Shown: positions 2,275 through 7,806 of the stretch, piece by piece
Numbering within the stretch: position 1 is the stretch's first letter
Layout of the letters: each line of letters starts with the position of its first letter
Origin: Selaginella moellendorffii
Taxonomy: Eukaryota; Plantae; Lycopodiophyta
Reading direction: 5' to 3'
Assembly: GCF_000143415.4 (NCBI RefSeq)
Contig: NW_003314294.1
Location: 1,476,910-1,488,823 of the forward strand
Length of the DNA: 11,914 bases
Notes under the pieces: generated by a model
The model's input: only the letters and a program-made list of their open reading frames with translations
What the model was told of the DNA's origin: nothing
Databases searched by the model: none
Translations under genes and position numbers: made by a program

Positions 2275-2501
2275 TTCAAGTGTTAGTAAATTGGGTTTAG
2301 CATTTATACTTAGCCAGATGAATATAAGGTAGCAACTCTTATGTGTTTCTTGCTAATCATACTCAACCTAGCTTTTACTTATCTTTTGCTTTAATTTGCA
2401 CTAGTTTGGCAAAAACTTTTGTATATTGAGTTTACTCCTTCAATATTACTATATGATAGTTTACCATGTCTACCAAACACCCTTGCTATCATGCCCCATG
2501 T
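2275..2501 (+). mobile_element. Partial LTR copy, left half (inverted homolog of 6618-6846)
   Basis: ttcaagtgttagtaaattgggtttagcatttatacttagcc matches the reverse complement of about 6806-6846 (ttcaagtgttaataaacttgatttagcatctgtacttggct). ccaaacaccct is also shared. Weak similarity may extend left to about 2200. Confidence 0.8.
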
Positions 2502-4157
2502 CAATGGGGGCTTTTCATATTTATCCTCTTGAAAAACCATAGAGGTCCAGTTTCGACACGCTCAAAACTGGCAAAGAGCATATGGGGGGGTTGAGAAGAG
2601 GGGAGGATCCCTAGAACTAGAGTGCGGTTCGGTTCTGTGCAGATCAGATCAAGGAACTAGTGTCCGGTTCTGTGCTGCCCAAAGCCATGCCACTCACTCC
2701 GCAAACGCGTGCTCCCTATCCGTACTGGTGGTGAACTTCGCGCCTTATCCATGGTCCCCAGCCTCATCTCTCCCATGTGGTTGCATCTACAGATGTGAAG
2801 GACTTGAGTCGATCGTGAGATCAGTGAAGGTACACCGCCCTTGCTTGATCTCCATCTGTATGACGCCTACAGTTTTCCAGAGATATAAGAAGCCCCTGGA
2901 GATGTACTGTCCTGGATCCCACAGTGCGGTGAACTGAGGAGGAGTGTGCCGTCTCCGGTAATGGTGATGCTGCTGCTGCCTGGGAGTCCTCTCCTCGCTG
3001 CTGTGTGACTGATCCCCTCCAACTGGGATTGCTGTTTCCAGCCTCCCATCAGGCCGTGCAAGTGTAGTGCCGCCACGCTAGTCCCACGGCCTCATACCAG
3101 TGTAGCCGTACCCTTGGCGCTATCCATCTGGAATCACAACCAAAGGCGAGCCGCTCCTTTCGGATCCGGGTTGAAGCTACGTTTCCGTACTCCAACAAGC
3201 TAGCCTGATGCAGCTTCTGACACGAGCCGTGCCCCTCGAAACATCCCATACATCAAATGGCGTTGCTCCGAGTGCCTTGATCATGGTGGATCCACAACCA
3301 AGGCAAGAAAGGGATCAGCCAACACAGCTGTACCGTACAAATTGGGACTTCAGTGTGCCGTCGAAAGTTGTTCCTTTGCCGATTGGGACTAGGTGTACAA
3401 TCGGAGGGTAGGGAAGTGCTGCCACGTAGTTTGAAGGACCCGGTGCGTGTCGGAGAATAGTGTCCTTTGCATATTCAAATGAGCAGCCGTAACGGCGCCA
3501 AGCGAGTTGTCCCCTCCTTAAGTGGAGCTTGGCTCTCCGGACCCCAAAACTCCGAACCCCAAGTGAATGAGGAAGGAAGGACGCTGCCAATGAGGTTCTG
3601 TGCAGCTAGTGTCCTTGGAAGAAGTTCCAGCAACCGTGGACTCCAAAGCCCCCAACTTGAACCATGTTCCGAAATTTGAACGTTTGGATCTTGCTCGTGA
3701 ACCGTTGGATTGCCACGAAGTTTTGCTGGCGTGTGCTCCTTCAGAGGATCTATCTTCCCACCGTTGCGATCAGTGAAAAGGTACGTGGTTCAGCCGCCGC
3801 CGCAATCCCTAGGTCGTCCATAACCCTAGCCGCCACCAGAGATAGGGTCGCCTTGATCTCCTGATTCCTGGCTCCAAATCGCCTGTTCTTGGACTCAGAA
3901 TGATCGTGGGGATGTGCTCTCTCCAGCCGTGAAAAGGAATCGTGGGAAATCCATGTGGAGAGCTCGCAGTGACTAAAAGAGTACTCTTGACGCTTTCTCG
4001 CTCATGGAACATGCAAATCCAGTGAAACCAAGGCACGGCTTGCTCTCAGCATCGTCCTTATTGCTCTCCTAGTCCTACTCCTACTCTGGATCAAGCACGA
4101 AAGTCGACTCTCAAGGCGCTCCTCTTCTCGCTAAACTTAGGGTTTTTTCTCTAGTCC
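2502..4157 (-). mobile_element. Unclassified 1656-bp GC-rich insertion flanked by a 16-bp target-site duplication; non-autonomous, retroposon-like
   Basis: CTATCATGCCCCATGT occurs at both 2486-2501 and 4158-4173. The two flanks join into one continuous homolog of 6355-6846, where this motif occurs only once (6618-6633). No TIR, poly(A) or long ORF is present. The strand is tentative, based on a telo-box AAACCCTA near the minus-strand 5' end. Confidence 0.8.
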
Positions 4158-4440
4158 CTATCATGCCCCATGTGTTGGTTTTATTCCGGTCCCATATGCT
4201 ATTTATGATAAGTGTCTAAATCCACTCAAGGGGCATATCTATGGAATGTAGAGAGTGTCTTGAATCCCATAGTATTGTTCCTACACCCTGATTTGAGAGT
4301 TAGCACCATTCTATATTTAGTAAGTTTTCACACTTATTCCATAAGTGAACTTCTAGGACTAAAGTGAAAGCCCAAAGTATGTATTCCTCACAGGGGGCAA
4401 GGTATGTGGGGGTTCCAAATGTATAGTAGGATAGTGGTTA
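4158..4440 (+). mobile_element. Partial LTR copy, right half (inverted homolog of 6355-6633)
   Basis: There is a 22-bp exact inverted match between 4233-4254 and 6538-6559. Collinear similarity continues through the TATA-like block (about 4420-4435 vs 6360-6380). Confidence 0.85.
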
Positions 4441-4749
4441 AAATGAATGTTATAACTTTTTCCAACACCTCAATAGGCAAACTCTCAAGAACAAAGTACC
4501 CACTTAGCATAAATGGACTCCAATGTTACTTTTTGTAAGTAAACTAGCTTCACTATCAACCATTTTGGGGTTGATTATTATTTAACCAAACAACACATTC
4601 TCACTATCAAATGGATATGATATAAAAATTATAACTTGATCATTAATCAAGTAACACCACAAGCAATGCCATAATATTATGTAAGTATCAAGTGCCAACT
4701 CAATTCGACAAAATGCAATATAAATGCCACACCCCACTAATAGAAATTT

Positions 4750-5210
4750 ACAACACCCAACACCATTAACTTTTTTCACAACACAGACAAGCCCATGCCA
4801 CTCTTTATCCAACCAAACTCAAAACTAATCCAACACTAAGCTACTCAAGGAGCAAAAGCAAGGTTCCCCAGAAAAGAATTAAGCATTGTAACCTAAGCTT
4901 TCAATAACAAACCTAGACAAAATATTTTAATGCTTCACCATTATCCATTTTATGGCTCACTACTTATAAAACTATCATAACCAATATGCATCAAGACAGG
5001 GACTCTTGATTATATGATGTGAACATGAGCAATGAGTTAACACCTCGTTGCAAATCATCTCTCCAAGAAAAGAAAATGATTTACATGTTTAATCCTTCAT
5101 CCTTAATAACTCTCTTTTCAGTCTCAACTTGATTAAACCTCAAGTTTGCATTCATAGTGCTTTCAGTTTAATCCATGAAAAGTTTATAAGAGAGTACAGT
5201 AATAACTATT
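4750..5210 (-). pseudogene. Highly decayed gag-like region of the minus-strand LTR element
   Basis: It lies downstream of the PBS, where gag is expected. The translation RDDLQRGVNSLLMFTSYNQE...MDNGEALKYF..GL and a CLCCEK patch loosely recall a retrotransposon capsid and zinc knuckle. There are many stops, and the support is weak. Confidence 0.35.
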
Positions 5211-5412
5211 TAAACCAATAGATTAATCCCTATAGTCTTAATAGATCCACTTATAATTATGCCTAAGAAGGATCCACTAAACAGCTACAAGCTATCCTAT
5301 TTGCCACTCATAGCAAATCTAGGGAAGGTTTACTTTCACTCATAGTACATGGAACAACTCATAGTAACCATGCTAACTTAAAGTGTAACTTGAGTTGCTA
5401 ATGTGCCTCAAT

Positions 5413-5496
5413 TATGAGCCCAAGTGCAAACCCATGTAAATGGTACATCTCAATCCATTATATGAGCCTAAGCACAAGCTCATACAATTTGGCACA
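5413..5496. repeat. Degenerate two-copy direct repeat, 48-bp period, in the element leader
   Basis: tatgagcccaagtgcaaacccatgtaaatggtaca (5413) vs tatgagcctaagcacaagctcatacaatttggcaca (5461). Confidence 0.55.
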
Positions 5497-5641
5497 GAAA
5501 GATAACTAAAATCCATACTCAAATAACAAATGCGAAATTATAACACCCAAACGTATACCCACTCGAATCATTTTTTTCATCTCTGCATATGCAATGAGAT
5601 CAGTTGCCCAATATTATTAGATAATACTTAATGAGACTCAT

Positions 5642-5653
5642 CCTTTGATACCA
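5642..5653 (-). other. Primer-binding site complementary to tRNA-iMet
   Basis: The minus strand reads ...GTGCTACA-TT-TGGTATCAAAGG; the canonical plant PBS is TGGTATCAGAGC. It lies 2 nt after the LTR end. Confidence 0.85.
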
Positions 5654-5863
5654 AATGTAGCACACCTGGTTTTCATCCTTTATCCTATAATGATTTACCA
5701 TAGGATAACCATGAAGTGGAAGCTAAACCCTCCATATGCCATGTGTCACATGCCATGTGTCCAAAGACAACAGAGTGGAACCCAAGTTTCATAGCTTTGA
5801 GCCACTAAATGAAGGTATGGAGCCAAACTCCCAAGCTTATAGCCAAGGAGCGAAAGAACTAGA

Positions 5864-6058
5864 TGTAAGCTCCTGAGTTTGGACTTCCCAGGAGGTCACC
5901 CAGCTCAGTACTATTCAAACCCAAGGACGCTTAACTCCAAATATCCCAAGACCCTTAACCGATTGGAAAAGGGGGTGCACTCTTGTTCATGGGCCCTTTC
6001 CCTCTATATTTGAACCCCTATGGATCGTTTCTCGAGTCGTTCCCTTTGGTTGCTTACA
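5864..6058 (-). mobile_element. Cassandra-type TRIM solo LTR (195 bp) carrying 5S rRNA-derived sequence
   Basis: The termini are TGTAAGC...GCTTACA (7-bp inverted repeat). A perfect 5-bp TSD, CTAGA, sits at 5859-5863 and 6059-6063. The internal 5S segment is at 5881-5936. Confidence 0.9.
5881..5936 (-). promoter_or_regulatory. 5S rRNA-derived Pol III type-1 internal control region (A box, IE, C box)
   Basis: The minus strand reads AGTTAAGCGTCCTTGGGTTTGAATAGTACTGAGCTGGGTGACCTCCTGGGAAGTCC. This is about 48/56 identical to the plant 5S sequence as I recall it (AGTTAAGCGTGCTTGGGCGAGAGTAGTACTAGGATGGGTGACCTCCTGGGAAGTCC). The 5' part and extreme 3' end of 5S are absent. Confidence 0.9.
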
Positions 6059-6952
6059 CTAGAGCATGAAATGACTCCTGAACATTCAGCCCAAGAATAA
6101 AGAGACAGGAGTATGGACATTGGAATAGTTCTAAAATATTTGACATCCTAATGCTATGACCAACACGCAAAACAGAGCTAAACAGAGTCTAGTACTATTT
6201 TAGCATATTGATGGCCTAATGCGAGGATATGGGTACTCCACTAGTTAACATGTTGTGGAATTTAGGCTTAAACCTAAGCTGAATGTAAAATAAGGATAGG
6301 CATGCAATTAGAAGTTGCTAAACTATACTTTAGGTTGGTTAACTATGCTCAAACTACCCACTATCCTTACTATATATTTTAAACCCCCCCTCCCCCTTTT
6401 AAGGAACACATATTTTCGGTTTAAACACCCTTAGTACCAGGAGTTAATCTTTGGGACTGACTTGAAACTTATTAAATATGGAATGGCACTAGATTGCAAA
6501 TTTGGACATAGGACCAATACTAACAATAAACTGACAATCTCTACATTCCATAGATATGCTAAATTAACAAATTTAAACACTTTTCATATATAGCAATTAA
6601 AACTGAACAGAACTAACACAAGAAGCATAATAGTGAGGGTGTTTGGCAAATATAATAAGCTATCATCTAGGAAATATTAAAAGACCAATCTCAATATTAC
6701 AGAGGTTCTTATCAAGCTAGTGCAAGACAGAGCAAAAGAAAATTAATAAGTCGGGCCAAGTATGCTTGGCTAAATAGACACTTAGCAATTCCTTATGCCC
6801 ATTTAGCCAAGTACAGATGCTAAATCAAGTTTATTAACACTTGAATACTTCAGCCATGTGTCTGCAAAATATCCTGAATTGCCACATGGCAACTATAGCA
6901 TGGGAGGCAAGGAAATTCCAAGGCTCACTTATTGGCAAGAAAGACCTCAAAG

Positions 6953-6996
6953 TTTAGGGTTTAGGTTTTAGTGATTTCACGCTTTAGGGTTTAGGG
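6953..6996. repeat. Cluster of plant telomere-like TTTAGGG units (telo-boxes) inside the LTR
   Basis: TTTAGGG-TTTAGG-TTTTAG at 6953-6971 and TTTAGGG x2 at 6983-6996. Confidence 0.7.
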
Positions 6997-7806
6997 TGGC
7001 ACCCTATTTTCTTGCTGTGATGAATCATTCCATCGATCTGCCATGTCCTATGCTGTAGCTTGATTCCTCTTGCCAGTTTCATCGTTTAGGCGCAGGAGGC
7101 CAGTCTGCATTTTCTGCATGTTTTTGCCATAGCTTCGTGGATGTGAGATTTTTGGCAGGGTTCTTCATTCTCGGAGCAAAATTTTTCCTCTCATGATCAC
7201 AGTGGTGCCTGAGACAGAGGCATGATGCAGCAACTCTATGTGCTCTTGGTTCCTCATGCCCACAACTGCTCTCATGTTAGAGCACAACTATGTGGAGTTT
7301 GATGGCAACCTCAGAAATGGTTCAGAAAACCAATGTTAAAAACAAGGGGTAAATAACTAAAACTAGTGTTGAAGGCTCATGTACTCACAATACATAATAT
7401 TAAAGGTAATTACAAAGAAAAAATATATAACATATATAAGTCACATAAGTGGTAAGGTGTAAAGTGCCTGATTTGTGTAGTGTACCCTAAGCAAGAATGG
7501 TGAAGCAATAGTCTCCTGAACTCTTAAGAGTAGCTGAATTTCCTGGAAATCATGAGCAAAAACTGGAGTAATTACATCTTCATTCTTCAGAAGCATTTTT
7601 TTTTCAAACAAAAATCAAATTGTACCCTCCTGCTACACAAGGTGGCCGCCTTGTACCATCAACACAAATTCTGCGAGGGAGGTTTGAGCTCCCACGTCTT
7701 GCAATAGATTGATTTGGCCCAAGAATTCATCGATTGGATTCCCCAAAGGCATTGTCCAGGGCACATACTTCTTAGGTTCAGGGTTAGGGTTGTGGCGCGG
7801 GCGGCG

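Follow-up and report, generated by a model that had tools for sequence, protein, structure and literature searches.

Analysis of a stretch of 11,914 nucleotides from the Selaginella moellendorffii genome (the window, to which all coordinates refer) revealed a young, non-coding insert of 1656 bp that interrupts an old, decayed repeat and is flanked by an exact 16-bp target-site duplication (TSD). With moderate confidence, we interpret this insert as a copy of a non-coding RNA, retroposed in the minus orientation through target priming by a LINE that recognizes the tail of that RNA. LINE-mediated retroposition in the wider sense, i.e., with a one-off retrocopy of a cellular transcript counted in, is rather probable.

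A precise insertion into an old repeat

The window contains two exact copies of the 16-mer CTATCATGCCCCATGT, at positions 2486–2501 and 4158–4173, and no further match when up to three mismatches are allowed. The bases that flank the two copies are unlike each other (G2485 vs. C4157 and C2502 vs. G4174), and the duplication is therefore exactly 16 bp long. Beyond this pair, exact direct repeats of at least 16 nt are confined to a 185-bp tandem duplication at 11054–11415. The two copies enclose 1656 bp (2502–4157). Comparison of the window against itself by BLASTN revealed that positions 2275–2501 align in inverted orientation to 6845–6618 with 72% identity and that positions 4155–4440 align, likewise inverted, to 6636–6355 with 70% identity, the right match being colinear with the left one. 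The features of the insertion and its surroundings are as follows:

2275–2485, plus strand: left part of the host repeat (72% identity to the reverse complement of 6618–6845; CpG o/e 0.10)
2486–2501, no strand assigned: left TSD copy, CTATCATGCCCCATGT (exact match; homology to the paralog breaks off at its end)
2502–4157, minus strand (probable sense strand): non-coding insert of 1656 bp (judged by GC content, CpG o/e and searches without matches)
4158–4173, no strand assigned: right TSD copy (exact match; homology to the paralog restarts here)
4174–4440, plus strand: right part of the host repeat (70% identity to the reverse complement of 6355–6636; CpG o/e 0.13)
6355–6845, minus strand: inverted paralog of the host repeat, which shows the empty site (BLASTN and junction alignment)

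The empty site was reconstructed by taking out the insert together with one repeat copy and was then aligned to the reverse complement of 6300–6920, which yielded 75% identity with no gap across the junction. In the inverted paralog, the motif is present in a single copy, CTATTATGCTTCTTGT (6618–6633), which matches the duplicated 16-mer at 12 of 16 positions, and three of the four differences are C/T. Because the alignment runs across the junction without a gap and the paralog carries the motif only once, the insertion was precise, with a 16-bp TSD and no loss of target bases. These results bear out a preliminary description of this stretch, which had claimed both an exact 16-bp TSD and an empty site visible in the same window.

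The insert itself starts with CAATG and ends with AGTCC. The possible nick contexts, CATGT/GTTGG on the minus strand and GATAG/CAAGG on the plus strand, do not resemble the L1 consensus TTTT/AA, and the target site is not T-rich. When the 48-nt empty site was compared with 26 eukaryotic LSU rDNA loci (none of them from Selaginella), it scored no better than shuffled versions of itself; the rDNA comparisons reported here left out locus L032, which comes from a human-gut sample. Judging from these alignments, the insertion target appears to be an old dispersed repeat and not a 28S-like site.

The insert is more GC-rich than its flanks, as had been described before, and the difference extends to its CpG content. 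Specifically, the insert has a GC content of 0.53 and a CpG o/e of 0.69, in comparison with 0.32–0.35 and 0.10–0.13, respectively, in the flanking DNA. The CpG o/e of the insert is close to that of the neighboring gene (0.78), and the old repeats at 2100–2485, 4174–5800 and 840–2100 display values of 0.10–0.13 and have lost CAG/CTG as well. Differences between the two copies of the host repeat are mostly transitions. The CpG o/e of 0.69 in the insert vs. 0.10–0.13 in the flanks indicates that the insertion took place long after the host repeat had decayed, and a recent date also fits the perfect TSD. A young insert thus lies within an old, methylation-decayed repeat, and the contrast in GC content is a contrast in age. 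Values of ~0.1 for old repeats vs. ~0.7 for young DNA provide a simple relative clock for nested insertions in S. moellendorffii.

A third, partial copy of the host-repeat end was observed in inverted orientation at 396–469 (76% identity to 4363–4436). It adjoins a C10G7 palindrome (430–447) and hexamer/12-mer microsatellites (489–596).

Content of the insert and element classes considered

Neither a terminal inverted repeat (TIR) joining the ends of the insert nor a terminal direct repeat or LTR was found, and the insert contains no internal repeats above chance. No A-run, T-run or simple-repeat tail is present at either end, and neither the nucleotide sequence of the insert nor its translation resembles any other part of the window. 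The longest stop-free stretch of the insert comprises 134 codons, of which ~0.4 would be expected by chance at its GC content and length according to our estimate, and the longest ORF starting with ATG encodes 67 aa. In these respects, the earlier account of the insert as lacking TIRs, poly(A) and an ORF was accurate.

Database searches gave a consistent picture. Pfam returned no match for the 20 longest stop-free pieces of the insert, even at E-values up to 10, and the 134-aa piece was equally without matches in a word-indexed protein search. An exhaustive phmmer search with the same piece against 1.84 billion representatives yielded only three borderline matches, which we judged to be spurious because they are translated tandem repeats whose scores sum repeated 26-aa matches. 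Exact look-up of three ATG ORFs of the insert in the protein collection found none of them; like the word-indexed search, this look-up is uninformative on copy number. Using Rfam and ARAGORN, we detected no tRNA, 5S or 7SL head, hammerhead (E-values up to 10), group II intron or rRNA in the insert. There was likewise no match in blastn searches against plasmids and phages, in the comparison with 118 eukaryotic rDNA loci, or in an exact scan of metagenome contigs for the tail hairpin described below, the last result being as expected for plant DNA. The insert is without coding capacity. Moreover, Pfam, Rfam and ARAGORN detected no organelle signature in the insert, be it a gene of plastid or mitochondrial type, a tRNA, an rRNA or a group II intron. 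Within the scope of these family-level searches and of the blastn comparisons, an organelle or bacterial origin appears unlikely.

Several element classes were considered for the insert and rejected. An LTR retrotransposon or solo LTR would have a TSD of 4–6 bp instead of 16 bp, TG…CA ends instead of CAATG…AGTCC, and terminal direct repeats. For TIR DNA transposons (MITE, MULE, hAT and others), no inverted pair joins the ends, and the TSD of 16 bp stands against fixed lengths of 2–11 bp. The preliminary argument that the TSD is too long for LTR elements and common TIR elements is therefore sound, and Helitrons can be added to the excluded classes, since a TSD is present and the termini fit 5′-TC…CTRR-3′ on neither strand. 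A Penelope-like element was dismissed on the basis of the absence of pseudo-LTRs or internal repeats, of a hammerhead at E-values up to 10, and of any reverse transcriptase or GIY-YIG remnant in Pfam. The insert is no SINE in the strict sense either, as it has no small-RNA head according to Rfam and the tRNA search and measures 1656 bp vs. under ~600 bp. An L1-type processed retrocopy is contradicted by the lack of a poly(A) tract and of a TTTT/AA-like target, and an origin from rDNA by the lack of a match among the 118 rDNA loci. By comparison, a LINE-dependent retroposon is marked by precise insertion with a TSD of roughly 7–30 bp and by the absence of coding capacity of its own, and both were found here. 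The window itself contains no LINE.

Ends of the insert and possible route of insertion

Further analysis of the insert ends revealed a structured terminus on one strand. Read as minus-strand RNA, the insert is predicted to form two hairpins within its last 74 nt (from 2575 down to 2502), with 7 unpaired nucleotides, CCCAUUG, at the very end, and a telo-box lies near the opposite end of the same strand:

4137–4145, minus strand: telo-box AAACCCTAA (match to the AAACCCTA motif, starting 13 nt into the minus strand of the insert)
2547–2571, minus strand: hairpin 1 of the putative 3′ tail, a 10-bp stem with one G·U pair and a 5-nt loop (MFE and centroid structures)
2509–2538, minus strand: hairpin 2 of the putative 3′ tail, a 9-bp stem with one U·G pair and a 12-nt loop with AUAAAU (predicted fold)
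2502–2508, minus strand: single-stranded end CCCAUUG, 7 nt, after hairpin 2

The minus-strand tail has a predicted folding energy of −21.3 kcal/mol (z = −3.54); only 1 of 200 shuffled sequences folds as well, and the MFE structure is identical to the centroid structure. As plus-strand RNA, the same 74 nt reach −14.1 kcal/mol (z = −0.80), and the one G·U pair that each stem contains on the minus-strand RNA corresponds to a C·A mismatch on the plus strand. The limits of the 74-nt tail were chosen after the fold had been seen, and among the 80 windows of a sliding scan (80 nt each), the terminal one takes only 6th place; the fold therefore lends modest support to the putative tail and to the orientation. 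The reverse orientation was rejected because no fold is predicted for the plus-strand 3′ end (z about +1), and a Pol III terminator at the plus-strand terminus because the T6 run there sits 9 nt inside the end.

At its other end, the minus strand begins with GGACTAGAGAAAAAACCCTAAG, and the telo-box AAACCCTAA starts at nt 13 within a purine-rich leader. The window contains four matches to AAACCCTA vs. 0.47 expected. Telo-boxes in the same orientation are several-fold enriched in the 5′ UTRs of Arabidopsis and rice, near the transcription start (PMC3022908). The AUAAAU motif, located 18–23 nt from the minus-strand 3′ end, is a weak signal, and both this motif and the telo-box are short. Since a strand-specific double hairpin is present at one end and a telo-box of the 5′-UTR type at the other, the minus strand is likely the sense strand of the insert, an orientation proposed here for the first time. 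Judged by their motifs and predicted fold, the two ends resemble the 5′ and 3′ termini of a single minus-strand transcript.

A possible route of insertion can be outlined on this basis. The source would be a non-coding RNA of ~1.66 kb whose sense strand is the minus strand of the window, with GGACUAGAG as its predicted start and …CCCCCAUUG as its predicted end. A LINE endonuclease would nick the plus strand after …CCCCATGT (2501), and the free 3′-OH would prime cDNA synthesis at the 3′ end of the RNA (…GAAAAGCCCCCAUUG). The second strand would then be nicked 16 bp away and both overhangs filled in, giving rise to the exact 16-bp duplication. The enzyme probably recognizes the structured 3′ end, i.e., the two hairpins together with the 7-nt single-stranded end, in the manner of “stringent-type” LINEs, and such recognition would explain the missing A-tail. 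The copy looks full-length, with a purine-rich, telo-box-containing leader resembling the 5′ UTR of a plant RNA polymerase II transcript, and this leader could bring promoter-proximal signals along with every new copy.

Target-primed retroposition is supported by the precise insertion, the exact TSD, the absence of TIRs and LTRs, and the lack of coding capacity, and precise retroposition of the LINE type is a well-known kind of event. A second-strand nick staggered by 8–30 nt is the signature of target-primed reverse transcription and the standard source of such TSDs (PMC5322556), and retrocopies that have a TSD but no tail are documented (PMC5322556; PMC4838847). Because the nick contexts are unlike the L1 consensus TTTT/AA, a tail-recognizing enzyme is a likelier agent than relaxed L1-type activity. 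For partners of LINEs that recognize a specific 3′ stem-loop, the absence of a poly(A) tail is expected (cf. PMC5135761). We infer that the insert originated from an RNA, in the minus orientation and with a LINE as partner, and that it most likely belongs to a LINE-dependent non-autonomous family.

The insert resembles several known systems in part. Pairs of stringent-type LINEs and their non-autonomous partners, such as UnaL2/UnaSINE1 of the eel (cf. PMC5135761), have in common with it the non-coding partner, a TSD of 8–30 bp, the absence of poly(A), and a stem-loop near the 3′ end that is followed by a short single-stranded end. In contrast to such partners, the insert is, at 1.66 kb, far longer than a SINE and lacks a Pol III promoter, a terminal short-repeat tail and any head of the tRNA, 5S or 7SL type. 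Therian tail-less retropseudogenes (PMC5322556) are similarly flanked by TSDs, lack an A-tail and are derived from RNA, as the insert putatively is. However, they occupy T-rich L1 targets, unlike the insert, and stem from known small RNAs or from mRNAs truncated at single-stranded sites. Plant L1-like processed retrocopies (PMC4838847) have TSDs of 13–17 bp and insert independently of LTR elements, as is the case here, but they carry poly(A) tracts and have identifiable protein-coding parents, whereas the insert has neither.

The preliminary description had suggested a young, tail-less retroposon or retrocopy. The precise TSD, the youth of the insert, its lack of coding capacity and the minus-strand tail fold support that suggestion in part, and filler DNA and an unclassified element still compete with it. 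Filler DNA, which we regard as an unlikely source, would have been captured during the repair of a staggered double-strand break: nicks 16 bp apart would have left overhangs that were filled in, with a 1.66-kb fragment ligated between them. Such a fragment, either genomic DNA or cDNA from elsewhere and with the same low probability, would mimic a TSD without any transposition machinery. The lack of a tail, of TIRs, of any recognizable transposon feature and of an L1-type target motif is compatible with this scenario, as is the absence of signs of a family in the protein collections and metagenome contigs searched. Patch-mediated breaks that produce tandem duplications have reportedly been described for plants, by Vaughn and Bennetzen in 2014, and would fit as well. 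However, the junctions are perfectly clean, with neither deletion nor microhomology, which is unusual for capture by end joining. The ends of the fragment also look transcript-like, with a telo-box leader on one side and a tail structured on one strand only on the other, and no organelle gene, tRNA or rRNA signal points to a plastid or mitochondrial source.

Rather unlikely, too, is a one-off event in which a LINE acting in trans produced a tail-less retrocopy of a cellular non-coding RNA or untranslated transcript, with no propagating family behind it. Within the window, such a retrocopy would look identical to a family member, and all of the evidence for LINE-mediated retroposition applies to it equally. 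In addition, leaders with a telo-box are a typical feature of ordinary plant genes (PMC3022908), and retrocopies without a tail that keep their TSD are documented in mammals (PMC5322556). On the other hand, the tail-less copies made by relaxed L1 activity keep a T-rich target, which is not seen here, and they are usually 3′-truncated at single-stranded sites (PMC5322556). The insert instead ends just past the double hairpin, more like a dedicated recognition tail.

A mobile element of an unclassified type, generating a 16-bp staggered cut and having neither TIRs nor a tail, would agree with the absence of every standard superfamily signature, yet it is highly improbable, as the insert encodes no enzyme and its strand-specific RNA fold points to an RNA intermediate. 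A 16-bp TSD is not known to us from any superfamily of eukaryotic DNA transposons. The same very low probability applies to an unclassified eukaryotic element of this kind that also lacks LTRs and to a milder version, namely, a Pol II-driven family of long non-coding retroposons in a lycophyte that would use the telo-box leader as a portable promoter element and be mobilized genome-wide by a tail-recognizing LINE.

The significance of retroposition by a tail-recognizing LINE depends on whether the insert belongs to a family. If a family is confirmed, this copy would provide a reference insertion that is young and clean, retains both ends and an exact TSD, and can be compared with a visible empty site. 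It would exemplify, in a lycophyte, a long non-coding retroposon that depends on a LINE; systems of LINEs and their partners are poorly described in plants. In addition, the element would be shown to land outside rDNA. If the insert is single-copy, it would reflect a common kind of repair or retrocopying and hold little interest beyond this locus.

Neighboring gene and other features of the window

A link between the insert and a neighboring NTPase-nuclease gene had been considered conceivable in the preliminary description. Our results lend no support to such a link: the insert and the gene share no similarity at the nucleotide or translated level, the ~3.4 kb between the insert and the start of the NTPase ORF consist of old, decayed repeat, and the gene, which has a paralog, is annotated as a host gene. 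Specifically, the ORF at 7807–9741 on the plus strand matches the annotated protein SELMODRAFT_417218 with 100% identity across 85% of its length. It is intron-less, encodes 645 aa and has a CpG o/e of 0.78 amid CpG-depleted repeats, and its only relative in the word-indexed search is a Selaginella paralog with 41% identity. Weak, sub-threshold Pfam matches to P-loop/AAA families cover residues 37–230 of the protein. The “nuclease” part of the earlier designation found no support, since Pfam detected neither a match nor a nuclease family in the C-terminal half. The full-length protein has no match among PDB structures, and no TSD was found around the gene.

The rest of the window contains several minor features. 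The plus-strand frames at 1622–2180 are riddled with stops and resemble, by eye, a Ty3/gypsy reverse transcriptase (e.g., SPWCFPIVLTTKSDGSLCMCIN); this resemblance was not confirmed by Pfam searches with short pieces of the region. On the minus strand, a 5S rRNA-like stretch lies in decayed repeat DNA at 5867–5954 (36.6 bits vs. an Rfam gathering score of 38; E-value of 1.3e-4) and may represent a Cassandra-type TRIM LTR or another 5S-derived element. The tandem duplication at 11054–11415 has a 185-bp unit, comprises 1.9 copies with 83% identity and is located in non-coding DNA. Finally, TRF identified a degenerate TTTAGGG-like array at 6952–6997, whose minus strand contains two exact telo-boxes. 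A likewise degenerate telomere-type repeat, GGTTCAGGGTTAGGGTT, is present at 7770–7790, just upstream of the NTPase start codon. Both are possibly promoter telo-boxes rather than telomere remnants.
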